Shown: positions 42,301 through 54,300, counted from the first letter of the stretch. The stretch is DNA of 64,000 nt from Octopus sinensis (GCF_006345805.1 NC_043001.1:26970001-27034000), one strand, 5' to 3'. Notes: generated by a model not told the origin, from the letters alone. Numbers and translations are program-made.

Positions 42301-45300
42301 ATAGTTAATAGGATGAGAAAGAAAAATGAGTTATCTTACATCTTTGATGCTGAACAGTACATTTCATTAGCTGAACAGCCCAGAGGGAAAATTGTTACTG
42401 GTGCTTGTGTAGTGGTAACTATAACTGAAATAGTCAAACAAATCTTTTAACTTTTATCATTTACTTGTTTCAGTCATTTGACTAAACCTGTCAAGTAGTG
42501 TCCCAGTCAAGTAGGGACACTGCTTGATGAGTTTAGTGAAATAAATTGGCCTCAGTTCTTTTTTTTAAAGCCTCACTTATTCTATCAGTTACTTGTGTTG
42601 TACTACTAAGTTACAGGGACTTTGATATACCAACACCGATTGTCAAATGTTGATGGAGGGACAAATAAAGACACATAAACACACATATATATATTATACA
42701 CAATTAGCTTCCAACCATTAATGAAATCCACTCACAAAGGCAATGGATGGGCTGGGGCTATAGTGGAAGACACTTTCCCAAGATGCCCTGTAGTGAGATG
42801 GAACCTGAAACCATGTGGGTGCAAAGCCAGCTTCTTGCAGTAGACATAAAAAGGAAAAATTACAAGGATTATTTTTGTAATTTTAAATAAAATTGGCCAT
42901 ATTTAACTTTCTATGAAGTGGCGTTTATGTTTTGTGTCTCTGCAGCCTGAGAGTCTTCTTGCTTTTTCTTTCACCGAATTAAATTCCTGTTGTTTAAGTA
43001 AATTTCTCATTTTTGATAATGATTGCCCATTATTACAAGTACTTAAATAAAATTTGGGATTTTTTGCGGAGGGTGAAAGTGGTAACAAGAACAGAACTGT
43101 GAGAACAAAACAGTAAAAAAATAAAAAAGAAAAAACAGGAAAAGACAGAACAATAGATATATAGATATGGATTCACATGCACACACCCAGACACGCATTT
43201 AGACTATTAAGCAATCTACAGCAAACTATTGAGATGAAATGGGAAAACAATTTAAAGCATATCACTTATGGAAAAGAGATTTCCAGTCTAACTGGAAATT
43301 TTTGTTACTGAAATCCATGTGCTTGAAATGAAGGATAGGAAGAGAAGGTTTTATGTATTATGCAAACATCACATATAGGAAAGACATTGAAATAAAGTGT
43401 TTAAGGAGAAAAGAAAAATATGAAATATTTATGCTTTAGAAACGTCTGAATAAACAAGCTGTCAATCATTAGCAATAGAATGAAAATGTGAAACAATTCA
43501 AGCATACTTTATCAGTCATAATTACATATCATTGAAGCTTGACCAGAACTGGGAGAAAAGTTTTCTATCATTTGTAAGTTACCTTCCCAAATAATACATA
43601 ATAATTGATTTTACAGTTACAGAATTGTGACAACCTTGTTATAATCATATTTATAAATTCAAATATAGCCACTTATAATGAATTAAAATCATTTCAATTA
43701 TTATACATACCACAATCTTTCTCATCTTCCCCATTTGGACAGTCATTTTCTCCATCACATTTCCAACTCAGTAAAATGCAGCTGTTATAATGAAATTTTG
43801 TTCATATAGAAATCAACTCAAGCAATACTTATGTGTGTATTTTAATTTATGGCTTTTGAGAAGAAAATATTTTTTGTCTAGGTGATGAAAGAAAATATTT
43901 ATTCTAGTATGTGATCAAGAGCAAAATTCATTGCATGAGAAGCCAGACACACTTTCACATATAGGTAAGAGAAAGATGTGTTCACCTTTCATAAAATTAT
44001 AACCAGATTTGCTTTTTCTTCCCCTAGTTTTAACGTACTTTAGAAACATATTCATTGCTTATGAATATTAAGATGGTTAATAGGATGAGAAAGAAAAAAA
44101 GAGTTATCGTACGTGTTTGTGGATGTACAATACATTTCATTATCTGAACAGTCCAGGGAAAGAGTTGTTGTAACTGGAGCTTGTGTAGTTGTAACTGGAG
44201 CTCGTGTAGTTGTAACTATATCTGAAATAGTAAAACAAATCTTTTAACTTTTTATCATTTACTTGCTTCAGTCATTTGATTAAATCCTTCAAGCAGTGAC
44301 CCAGTCATGGTGGCATGATATTTGAAGGGCTTAGTCAAATAAATTGGCTCCGGTTCTTATTTTTAAGATCTCATACTATTTCTATCAGTTGATTGTGCTG
44401 TGCCACTAAATTCCAGGGACATTAACAAACAAACACTGGTTATCAAATGTCAGTGGAGAGGGAATCACAAACACAAATTCACATAAACACACATATTATA
44501 ACGCAATGAGCTTCTACCCACCAAGCAAATCCACTCCACAAGGCACTAGTTGGGTTAGGGCTATTGTGGAAGACACTTGCTCAATGTGTCCTGTAATGGG
44601 ACTGAACCTAAACCATGTGATAGACATGAAATTGAAAAATGAAAAGAAAAATATTTGTAAACATCACAATATCATTGGCTTTTGAGAATTGATTGGTTAC
44701 TTAAAAACTGATACTTATTTTTGCTTGTACTGTGTCAGGTTTCTTTCTTACTGTAAATTATTTCATTAATCAGGAATCAGTAATCAGCAACATGAAAGTG
44801 AGAGTTGCAATTGATCATCATTTTCATTTTAAAGTCCATTTTTTTCTTTTTTGCATGGATCAGACAGGATTCTTTGAGAGAGATTTTTCCATAGCCTGAT
44901 GCCTTTCCTGTTGTTAACCCTCACCTTTTTCCAAGCAAGTTTTTAAACTCCTAGTTTGTTAAACAATGAACAGCCCAGATATGATTTTGTGACTGACTGC
45001 AAGCATGAGACATCACCTGTGATGTTTGCAGTTGGTGAGGATGATGAGAGAAAGAAACTCACTGAGACAAACACATACATGCAAGGACACACACACACAC
45101 ACACACACACACACACACAAGTATATGCATACATACATACAATGACTGCACATCATTAGAGTACTGCTTCCATACATCGAATGTTACACCAATAATCTAT
45201 GCATGCACACATGTACTCATGCATACATACATACAAATTTAGACACATCCATTTATATACATAAATGTATAATGGTGTCAGTGTTTGTGTGTGTGTTTGT

Positions 45301-51300: not shown

Positions 51301-54300
51301 TCGATAACGAGGGGGCAGCCACCATGTATGTATGTATGTATGTATGTATGCAAGCATGTGTATATGTATGTATGTACTAGATATTGGACCCAGCATTGCT
51401 CATGTTTTCACGTTGAGGTTAAGTCACCTGTATTGTTAAGCCCACTTGTATTGAATAAGCATTTTCTAAGAGACTATTCTCTCGACTTTGTTGAAATCTT
51501 ACATGTGAAAAAGTGCAAAAGCTGCAGAATAAATAGCATCATTATGGGAATTTTCGATAGAGCTCACAAAAATCGATGCCAACTGATCATTATGGAATTT
51601 TCGAAAAATTCCGGCTTTATTTGAACTTGAGGACTTGTGATCTACCTATATACCAAATATCATTAAAATTAGTTGGACGGTGTGGGAGGAGTAACTGTAA
51701 TCCCAAACAGACACAAACACACACACAAACACTGACACCATTACACATTATGTATATAAATGGATGTGTCTAAATTTGTATGTATGTATGCATGAGTACA
51801 TGTGTGCATGCATAGATTATTGGTGTAACATTCGATGTATGGAAGCAGTACTCTAATGATGTGCAGTCATTGTATGTATGCATATACTTGTGTGTGTGTG
51901 TGTGTGTGTGTGTGTGTGTCCTTGCATGTATGTGTTTGTCTCAGTGAGTTTCTTTCTCTCATCATCCTCACCAACTGCAAACATCACAGGTGATGTCTCA
52001 TGCTTGCAGTCAGTCACAAAATCATATCTGGGCTGTTCATTGTTTAACAAACTAGGAGTTTAAAAACTTGCTTGGAAAAAGGTGAGGGTTAACAACAGGA
52101 AAGGCATTAAGCTATGGAAAAATCTCTCTCTAAGAATCTTGTCTGATCCATGCAAAAGAGAAAAAAATGGACTTTAAAATGAAAATGATGATCAATTGCA
52201 ACTCTCACTTTCATGTTGCTGATTACTGATTCCTGATTAATGAAATAATTTACAGTAAGAAAGAAACCTGACACAGTACAAGCAAAAATAAGTATCAGTT
52301 TTTAAGTAACCAATCAATTCTCAAAAGCCAATGATATTGTGATGTTTACAAATATTTTTCTTTTCATTTTTCAATTTCATGTCTATCACATGGTTTAGGT
52401 TCAGTCCCATTACAGGACACATTGAGCAAGTGTCTTCCACAATAGCCCTAACCCAACTAGTGCCTTGTGAGTGGATTTGCTTGGTGGGTAGAAGCTCATT
52501 GCGTTATAATATGTGTGTTTATGTGAATTTGTGTTTGTGATTCCCTCTCCACTGACATTTGATAACCAGTGTTGGTTTGTTAATGTCCCTGGAATTTAGT
52601 GGCACAGCACAATCAACTGATAGAAATAGTATGAGATCTTAAAAATAAGAACCGGAGCCAATTTATTTGACTAAGCCCTTCAAATATCATGCCACCATGA
52701 CTGGGTCACTGCTTGAAGGATTTAATCAAATGACTGAAGCAAGTGAATGATAAAAAGTTAAAAGATTTGTTTTACTATTTCAGATATAGTTACAACTACA
52801 CGAGCTCTAGTTACAACTACACAAGCTCCAGTTACAACATCTCTTTCCCTGGACTGTCAAGTTAATGAAATGTATTGTACATACACAAACACGTAAGATA
52901 ACTCATTTTTCTTTCTCATCCTATTAACCATCTTAATATTCATAAGCAATGAATATGTTTCTAAAGTACGTTATAAACTAGGGGAAGGAAAAGCAAATCT
53001 GGTTATAATTTTATGAAAGGTGAACACATCTTTCTCTTACCTATATGTGAAAGTGTGTCTGGCTTCTCATGCAATGAATTTTGCTCTTGATCACATACTA
53101 GAATAAATATTTTCTTTCATCACCTAGACAAAAAATATTTTCTTCTCAAAAGCCATAAATTAAAATACACACATAAGTATTGCTTGAGTTGATTTCTATA
53201 TGAACAAAATTTCATTATAACAGCTGCATTTCACTGAGTTGGAAATGTGATGGAGAAAATGACTGTTCTGATGGTGAAGATGAGAAAGATTGTGGTATGT
53301 ATAATAATTGAAATGATTTTAATTCAATGCAAGTTGCTATATTTGAATTTATAAATATGATTATAACAAGGTTGTCACAATTCTGTAACTGTAAAATCAA
53401 TTATTATGTATTATTTGGGAAGGTAACTTACAAATGATAGAAAACTTTTCTCCCAGTTCTGGTCAAGCTTTAATGATATGTAATTATGACTAATAAAGTA
53501 TGCTTGAATTGTTTCACATTTTCATTCTATTGCTAATGATTGATAGCTTGTGTATTCAGACATGATGATGATGATGATTTATATATATATATAAAGTCAT
53601 AAATAAGGATAATATCAATATTTGAATATCGATATTATCAAGTGGCCAGCATGGGAAAAATACCGTACAAAGGTAATAATTTTTTACAACTAAAAATAAG
53701 GGTATCTGAGAGACTGGTTTTTAAAGTCAGGGTTTGTGGCTGCACAATACATTTCATTATCTGGACAGTCCAGGGAAAGAGTTGTTGTAACTGGAGCTTG
53801 TGTAGTTGTAACTGTAGCTTTTGTAGTTGTAACGGTAGCTTTTGTAGTTGTAACTATATCTGAAATAGTCAAACAAATCTTTTAACTTGTATCATTTACT
53901 TGCTTCAGTCATTTGACTAAATCCTTCAGGCATACAATGACCGCACATCATTAGAGTACTGCTTCCATACATCGAATGTTACACCAATCATCCATGCATG
54001 CACACATGTACACATGCATACAAATAATACAGAATAATTTATTTTACATAGTTACAGGATTGTGACAAGCTTGTTATAATTATATTTACAAATTCAAGTA
54101 AAGCCACTTGCATTGAATTAAAATCATCTCAATTATTATACATTCTTCTTCTTCTTCTTCTTCTTCTTCTCTTCTTCTTCTTCTTCTTCTTCTTCTTCTT
54201 CTTCTCTTCTTCTTCTTCTTCTTCTTCTTCTTCTTCTTCTTCTTCTTCTTCTTCTTCTTCTTCTTCTTCTTCTTGCTAGTTCATTTAGTGTCCAGTTATG

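Follow-up and report, generated by a model that had tools for sequence, protein, structure and literature searches.

Does an exon cassette that recurs inverted and cyclically permuted, a few kilobases from its source, have to have travelled as an extrachromosomal circle? The question is raised by a 64,000-nucleotide stretch of the Octopus sinensis genome (GCF_006345805.1 NC_043001.1:26970001-27034000; "the window" below, meaning the whole stretch that was analysed), which carries a tandem array of cassettes for LDL-receptor class A (LDLa) modules in what appears to be a neurotrypsin-like gene. A reading of this DNA made without knowledge of its origin (the sequence-only reading) described a donor with the segment order D-E-B-x-C-D' and an inverted insert with the order C-D-E-B, and attributed the insert to an extrachromosomal circular DNA (eccDNA) intermediate. 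The structure is real, and the kind of event behind it is ordinary: a tandem exon array underwent a complex rearrangement mediated by microhomology, with a breakpoint centred on a palindrome. As to its course, we put the chances at about even that it was a clustered template-switch rearrangement of the fork stalling and template switching/microhomology-mediated break-induced replication (FoSTeS/MMBIR) type, acting on an array that already contained a 3,544-bp tandem duplication, [D-E-B-x-C][D'-E'-B'...], and needing no circle. The eccDNA reading is possible if improbable, yet the sequence gives no indication of it.

Structure of the donor and of the inverted copy

The structure was read by self-BLAST, base-level reading of the junctions and alignment of the copies, which together reproduced the described donor order almost to the base. 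D (43444–43669, minus strand, delimited by alignment) is the intron sequence that opens cassette c3, and E (43670–45227, minus strand) is the remainder of that cassette, in which the exons were located and a Pfam Ldl_recept_a module was found. Exon b, coding for the C-terminal half of the module, lies at 43711–43781, and exon a, coding for a Thr-rich linker and the N-terminal half, at 44113–44221, both on the minus strand. B (45228–46781) is a non-cassette spacer whose sole other occurrence in the window is the inverted copy. The assembled Octopus bimaculoides locus does not have it, and the open reading frames (ORFs) of B match no Pfam family above threshold. B is followed by x (46782–46814), which is 33 bp long, as claimed, and is found in the donor but not in the inverted copy, and by C (46815–46987), also non-cassette and delimited by alignment. 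D' (46988–47212, minus strand) is a truncated second copy of D, 97.3% identical to it and cut at 47212|47213 by the junction to the next segment, A'. The tandem period of the donor is 3544 bp, and the donor amounts to 1.06 tandem units, with the C|D' junction present on the chromosome. At this boundary (46987|46988) the similarity between D and D' begins abruptly, while the cassette homology in the older cassette c1 and in O. bimaculoides runs further upstream; judged from these alignments, it is a rearrangement junction.

B also holds a 73-aa ORF, at 46325–46546 on the minus strand and at 50443–50664 on the plus strand of the inverted copy. It is identical in both copies and has a C2H2-like pattern of Cys and His residues; a look-up of the exact product gave no match.

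A palindrome that the sequence-only reading overlooked (46764–46862) extends from the last bases of B across x and into C. Its arms are 27 bp long and its loop is 45 nt (46791–46835, centre 46813). Folded as DNA, it reaches −20.5 kcal/mol (z = −7.2), and none of 200 shuffles folded as well. The B-side donor break, 46781, is inside the left arm of the palindrome, and the C-side break, 46814|46815, falls on the loop apex, 1–5 nt from the centre of the loop.

The inverted insert was confirmed, with an exact span of 3,515 bp at 50217–53731 (plus strand), reading C-D-E-B on the minus strand. It lies 3.4 kb from the donor. In inverted alignment, 43444–46781 matches 53561–50214 at 97.7% with indels counted (42 substitutions in 3327 aligned bases), and 46815–47212 matches 53735–53336 with three substitutions in 405 bases; matches of kilobases at 98–99% identity cannot be due to chance. 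The insert contains 3511 of the 3544 bp of the period, and the 33 bp that are missing are missing at one site, so the copy has the length of a full circle opened at a single point. On the plus strand, its exon a (52784–52892) and exon b (53224–53294) are both open. The LDLa exons of the array are on the minus strand, which corrects the sequence-only reading, and the insert exons are hence antisense to the host gene.

The insert is flanked, as had been claimed, by a direct duplication of about 144 bp with a single difference: 50073–50216 and 53732–53875 agree at 143 of 144 positions, with the mismatch at 50150, and the match extends 0 bp further on both sides. The junction microhomologies ACA (50214–50216) and GTTT (53732–53735) were likewise found as described, and sit within longer imperfect matches of 6/7 and 9/12 positions, respectively. 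The downstream copy, T1 (50073–50216, minus strand), consists of an exon a of the type denoted T (exon 50071–50200), less its last 2 nt, together with 16 nt of upstream intron, and the splice donor of the exon is kept. In the upstream copy, T2 (53732–53875, minus strand), the exon a is at 53732–53859, and its last 2 nt and GT donor are replaced by the insert. Inverted repeats of 773 bp with 96.6% identity (49400–50174 and 52789–53561) lie around a segment of ~2.6 kb; they could drive flip-flop inversion, and the locus may occur as two isomers.

A second rearrangement product, also overlooked in the sequence-only reading, adjoins both the donor and the flank duplication. This is a direct duplication of 2.85 kb, duplication (a), in which 41261 to ~44100 is repeated at 47213 to ~50058 with 99.5% identity. 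The first copy begins with segment A (cassette c2; 41261–43443, minus strand), and the second, A'-D''-E1'' (cassettes c4–c5; 47213–50072, minus strand, from self-BLAST), has its exon b at 49667–49737. The left junction, 47212|47213, has a CA microhomology within a CA-rich microsatellite and truncates D'. Between the right end of duplication (a) and the left edge of the flank duplication lie 0–80 bp, and there the c3 type of exon a gives way to the T type, which carries a 21-bp insertion. Since duplication (a) adjoins the flank duplication at one end and begins at the truncation point of D' at the other, the breakpoints form one cluster.

Whether the D of the insert is a recombinant of D and D' was examined in five aligned copies and three copies from O. 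bimaculoides. At 43453, 43461, 43513 and 43534 the insert carries the D' state. At the two sites that appeared D-type, 43477 and 43543, it is D' alone that differs from D, D'' and the insert, with the polarity at 43477 ambiguous, and these differences are most simply explained as later changes in D'. The pattern of mixed variants previously reported is thus real, but it is no D/D' mosaic: the "D-type" sites are private to D', and the D of the insert is D'-type. A crossover between D and D' inside D is unsupported, the insert having D' alleles at the lineage-specific sites. The C|D junction of the insert is base for base the chromosomal C|D' junction, and we found no other internal junction in the insert and none that is lacking from the chromosome. 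Because the junction matches and the adjoining D carries D' alleles, we conclude that the insert was copied across an existing junction. Cyclic permutation therefore loses its value here as the hallmark of a circle: it is diagnostic only if the donor is single-copy, whereas on a tandem repeat a linear copy over the junction looks identical. In the present case the permutation is real and the donor is tandem, and there is no fusion junction exclusive to the derived copy.

Divergence of the copies and of their exons

The newly formed segments have diverged to similar extents. Duplication (a) has 15 substitutions in 2840 bp (0.5%), B differs from inverted B by eight in 1558 (0.5%), and E2 from inverted E2 by about 0.8%; the values are 0.74% (3/405) for C-D' against the insert and 0.7% (1/144) for the flank duplication. 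These divergences, 0.5–0.8%, are indistinguishable (duplication (a) versus B, Fisher p = 1), and their equality would be compatible with one event, without proof of one.

The exons behave differently from the surrounding noncoding sequence. As the sequence-only reading had cautioned, the exons of the insert differ from those at 43711 and 44113 in c3; they do so at 11 of 180 coding nucleotides, versus 31 of 3162 noncoding ones (p = 8e-6), and nine of the 11 changes are nonsynonymous and two synonymous. When the changes were polarised with cassette c1 as outgroup, derived states were found on both lineages. Exon a of the insert belongs to neither the c3 nor the T type, and is without the 21-bp insertion and further states that characterise T. 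The 23-letter peptide of exon b has the same sequence as module 1 in the O. bimaculoides protein. By these states, the insert exons are a third module type. This rules out D' as the start of the T cassette with a T-type exon a in the insert, which has neither the 21-bp insertion nor the KAT states. Nor did we keep an earlier date for the insert than for duplication (a): the excess lies almost wholly in the two exons, and without them the unevenness is marginal and not significant (p = 0.09).

As the enrichment is confined to the exons, and would be senseless had it arisen after copying, in an antisense and unspliced copy, these exons appear to have evolved while spliced in the sense orientation. 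We infer that D' once continued into a cassette of its own, now lost from the plus strand, and probably into a full second unit, since the insert runs on into E2-B. With such a second unit, a linear C-D'-E'-B' template would have existed. A linear tandem unit of this kind, which the sequence-only reading had recognised as an explanation of the segment order without a circle, is thus implied by the insert exons, but it is not directly observed. More generally, the data suggest that tandem LDLa modules undergo fast, possibly adaptive divergence, or short-tract conversion. Divergence of the module exons is about sixfold faster than that of the introns, and this may be the more interesting biological lead.

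Origin of the rearrangement

Template switching on the tandem array would proceed as follows. The nascent strand would have broken off in D' at 47212 and re-primed 5.95 kb back, at 41261, on the CA microhomology, copying A-D-E1. A homeology-led move into a T-type exon a, of which 144 bp were copied, would have been followed by a jump to the opposite strand at ACA, within the left palindrome arm of the second unit. One full unit would then have been copied backwards (B'-E'-D', then C) to the palindrome loop of the first unit, and a switch at GTTT would have returned synthesis to the start of T and onward. Such a path would yield both direct duplications, of 2.85 kb and 144 bp, as well as the inverted insert, and would remove the rest of the second unit from the plus strand. 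One cascade of four switches, starting from two complete units with T further on ([U][U']...T), would reproduce the present sequence. It appears to be the most economical one, and two or three separate steps would be equally possible.

Multi-switch MMBIR had been mentioned in the sequence-only reading as an alternative, and it fits the locus as a whole better than the circle does. Within 6.5 kb of new DNA of the same age three non-homologous junctions lie in cis, all of them with 2–4 bp of microhomology and no long homology (CA at 47212|47213, ACA at 50216|50217 and GTTT at 53731|53732), and besides these one homeologous transition. A templated insertion from nearby, the 3515-bp inverted copy, is accompanied by copy gain in the form of the 2.85-kb and 144-bp duplications. 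The flank duplication next to an inverted nearby template is the expected outcome of re-priming behind the point of dissociation, and both donor switch points fall within the strong palindrome.

Templated and sometimes inverted insertions, microhomology junctions and flanking duplications have been described in FoSTeS/MMBIR rearrangements (e.g., PMC8421209, PMC11293582, PMC4352052). The octopus locus resembles these in its several cis junctions with 2–4 bp of microhomology, in an inverted template a few kilobases off, in copy gain, in the short duplication beside the insert and in breakpoints at a repeat that forms secondary structure. It differs in being a fixed or germline event in a cephalopod, known from an assembly alone, in a copied tract of exactly one tandem-repeat period, and in a replication dependence that is putative. 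The duplication–triplication/inversion–duplication (DUP-TRP/INV-DUP) structures, in which an inverted extra copy lies between direct copies (PMC11293582, PMC4352052), are similar in the inverted extra copy amid direct ones, in iterative template switches and in the role of inverted repeats. The order here, however, is direct, partial direct, inverted and 144-bp repeat, on a scale of kilobases rather than hundreds of kilobases. That order does not fit a DUP-TRP/INV-DUP structure, nor is there a junction in a pre-existing inverted low-copy repeat, and we rejected this assignment. An inversion with staggered-break duplications was rejected as well, on account of the segment order and the direct orientation of T1 and T2.

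Several observations weigh against template switching. The insert is one period less 33 bp, with its C-side end at the loop centre, and so close a match in phase is expected of a linear copy by chance in only ~2% of cases. Stalling of a polymerase is expected where a stem begins rather than at the apex; an end at the apex would follow directly if a nuclease had opened a hairpin on a circle or fragment. For a linear copy, moreover, the palindromes of two adjacent units would each have to act as a hot spot. Divergence from the plus strand is uneven along the insert, with 22 substitutions in 773 bp (2.8%) in D-E1-exon a compared to 20 in 2569 in E2-B (p = 5e-5), so a mosaic origin of the insert is possible. 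The postulated direct second unit (E'-B') is absent from the 64-kb window, the array of O. bimaculoides is interrupted by a 6-kb run of N, and the four switches are reconstructed rather than observed.

The end-points at the palindrome recall hairpin-centred breakage, in which hairpins are opened by Mre11-type nucleases. The likeness lies in a donor end-point 1–5 nt from the loop centre of a palindrome with a 27-bp stem; the difference is that just one of the two end-points is central here, and that the case is known from DNA sequence only.

These end-points also speak for a circle. In its amended form, that explanation, which we consider unlikely, has three stages: that a circle of 3,544 bp was set free by homologous recombination between the two tandem units of a sister chromatid or homologue; that the circle was opened at the loop apex of the palindrome in x, one end being trimmed by 33 nt to a TGT microhomology; and that the linear molecule was caught, inverted, at a staggered or replicative break in exon a of the T cassette. 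A single cut would account for both ends of an insert that is exactly one period minus 33 bp and whose C-side end, 46814|46815, coincides with the middle of the loop (46813) of the palindrome (z = −7.2), and both insertion junctions have microhomology. There are also precedents in cattle colour-sidedness and human segmental duplications (PMC7450558). Against this, there is no circle-specific closure junction, the sole internal junction being the pre-existing chromosomal C|D'. The tandem junction is still in the donor, which excludes simple excision from this chromatid, and the D × D' recombinant is not seen. The exons place any crossover beyond exon a, so that a long second unit, and hence a linear template, would have existed anyway. 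A 144-bp target duplication is unexpected from end-joining capture, and a circle would leave it to coincidence that the 2.85-kb duplication has the same age and abuts D' as well as the flank duplication. Of the circle-mediated reinsertion originally claimed, then, the local inverted copy of unit length, the microhomology junctions and the flank duplication stand, and the circle signature does not.

Known circle-mediated duplicative translocations include the cattle Cs29 and Cs6 alleles and human circular segmental-duplication pairs (PMC7450558). Shared with these are the cyclic permutation of the donor, the insertion microhomologies and the retention of the donor. Theirs, however, is a single-copy, linear donor, with a new fusion junction and distant, non-tandem sites, while here the "fusion" junction is already in the donor and the copy is 3.4 kb off and just 3.5 kb long. 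The criteria of that study, a single-copy non-tandem donor and breakpoints without homology, do not cleanly apply. Should a germline circle of one tandem cassette unit nonetheless have been opened at the hairpin tip and reintegrated 3.4 kb away, which we doubt, cephalopod genomes would have in circles a means of shuffling their LDLa exon cassettes, and a small-scale invertebrate example would join the few known germline circle re-integrations.

An assembly artefact, in which near-identical repeats or two structurally different haplotypes were misjoined, is quite unlikely. The repeat array is dense and the copies differ by 0.5–1%, within the allelic range, but the anatomy is that of true breakpoints rather than of misjoins: the duplication of 144 bp is clean, the microhomologies are 3–4 bp long, and the insert has unit length and ends in a palindrome. 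The copies also carry consistent private substitutions along their full length.

We regard as very unlikely a two-stage origin without a second full unit, in which D' was the start of the next ancestral cassette. Here, a template switch would first have given [A'-D''-E-B] followed by inverted [C-D'-E1'-T], with both stops at one palindrome break, and recombination between the 773-bp inverted repeats (49400–50174 and 53561–52789) would later have flipped the 2.6 kb between them. One palindrome break would thus account for both donor end-points, and repeats of 96.6% identity do flank the segment. The identity of the exon b peptide to O. bimaculoides module 1 fits a native neighbouring cassette, and E2-B of the insert is 0.5–0.8% from the plus strand compared to 2.8% for D-E1-exon a. 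However, this origin predicts that exon a of the insert is a recent copy of that of c3, yet the two differ at 6–8 of 109 nt, with private and c1-like states, and an extra inversion step is required.

That the 3.5-kb segment is a mobile element with captured exons is scarcely credible: although a direct duplication flanks it, and B and C are non-cassette and absent from the assembled O. bimaculoides locus, 144 bp far exceeds the target duplications of transposable elements, the palindrome arms are not at both termini, Pfam shows no transposable-element protein family in the ORFs of B, neither the window nor the O. bimaculoides locus holds additional copies, D-E is ancestral array sequence, and a Helitron-like origin was likewise rejected for want of family matches and proper termini.

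The O. bimaculoides locus (CM046605.1:22.77 Mb) aligns with 38.3–62.6 kb of the window at 83–94%. Its assembled parts contain three direct cassettes and no inverted cassette and no B, x or C, which makes for a weak outgroup given the 6-kb run of N in the array (11356–17403). Further runs of N (20382–20819 and 24262–33912) lie in or beside that array, and the count of three modules may be an underestimate. Protein searches returned no octopus other than O. bimaculoides.

If template switching did occur as outlined, a rapidly evolving LDLa array in an octopus neurotrypsin-like protease was remodelled by clustered microhomology events at a palindrome, and the inverted copy would be the fossil of a module otherwise lost from the gene, overwritten by duplication (a). 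Inferred from the sequence, the effects on the gene would be these: one intron would be enlarged by a 3.5-kb antisense cassette, the upstream exon-a copy T2 would be without a splice donor, the downstream copy T1 would keep its donor with just 16 nt of native upstream intron, and no LDLa module would be added to the protein. Tandem LDLa arrays grown by exon-cassette duplication are comparable in their two-exon, phase-compatible cassettes (109–130 + 71 nt, a multiple of three), each with a linker and one LDLa module, and in their several paralogous copies; they differ from the present case, in which the copy is antisense and unable to add a module.

Host gene and surrounding sequence

Each cassette, on the minus strand, codes for a Thr-rich linker and one LDLa module, split between two phase-compatible exons, exon a of 109–130 nt and exon b of 71 nt. 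Exons a and b of c3, when spliced, give a peptide of 37 | 23 letters with six cysteines and the acidic C-terminal cluster of an LDLa module, which matches Pfam Ldl_recept_a (PF00057) with E = 5.3e-11 and 43 bits (cut-off 24.1). The closest protein relatives are an O. bimaculoides "very low-density lipoprotein receptor", with 61–72% identity, and "neurotrypsin". SRCR, LDLa and trypsin exons are found at 10–38 kb, downstream of the array and on the same (minus) strand, and the host gene is on this ground most likely a neurotrypsin-like LDLa-SRCR-trypsin mosaic protease, encoded on the minus strand. The open frames there (10371–38815, minus strand) continue on from the cassette array and have their best matches in O. 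bimaculoides "neurotrypsin". They include trypsin frames (e.g., 10371–10763, 13330–13656 and 17299–17604), SRCR frames (20024–20269, 24365–24547, 28220–28591 and 29971–30186) and complete LDLa motifs (26889–26993 and 35179–35283), all on the minus strand. In O. bimaculoides, the array portion is annotated separately, as a "VLDL receptor" of 209 aa, perhaps because one gene was split between two models.

Two older cassettes border the rearranged region. Cassette c1 (39616–41260, minus strand; exon b 39905–39975, exon a 40300–40387) is 87.5% identical to 43423–45227, and the start of a further, c7-like cassette (53931–54164, minus strand) is ~90% identical to 41317–41553. In c2, exon b (41523–41624) has a 1-nt insertion at ~41555 that breaks the frame (PDERR*), while in c4 (47478–47578), the 99.5% copy of c2, the frame is intact; the break reflects an indel from base calling or else a pseudo-exon of recent origin. 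Sequences resembling the exon for the C-terminal half of LDLa, with a 24-letter peptide, occur upstream of the array at 61521–61763 (minus strand) and 56148–56211, and the array therefore reaches beyond the region studied.

The G+C content of the window is 35%, and short interspersed nuclear element (SINE)-like families and microsatellites are present, features that mark the DNA as eukaryotic. One SINE-like family has many copies, at 6959–7218 and at least ten other sites, and the microsatellites include (TA)234, (AAC)143 and (TTC)45 (among 16406–16872, 27597–28025 and 54143–54274). Directly beyond the array is a reverse-transcriptase-like ORF (54578–54871, minus strand), and two ORFs (18956–19339, plus strand, and 59918–60337, minus strand) resemble mariner/Tc1 transposases, as judged by eye.

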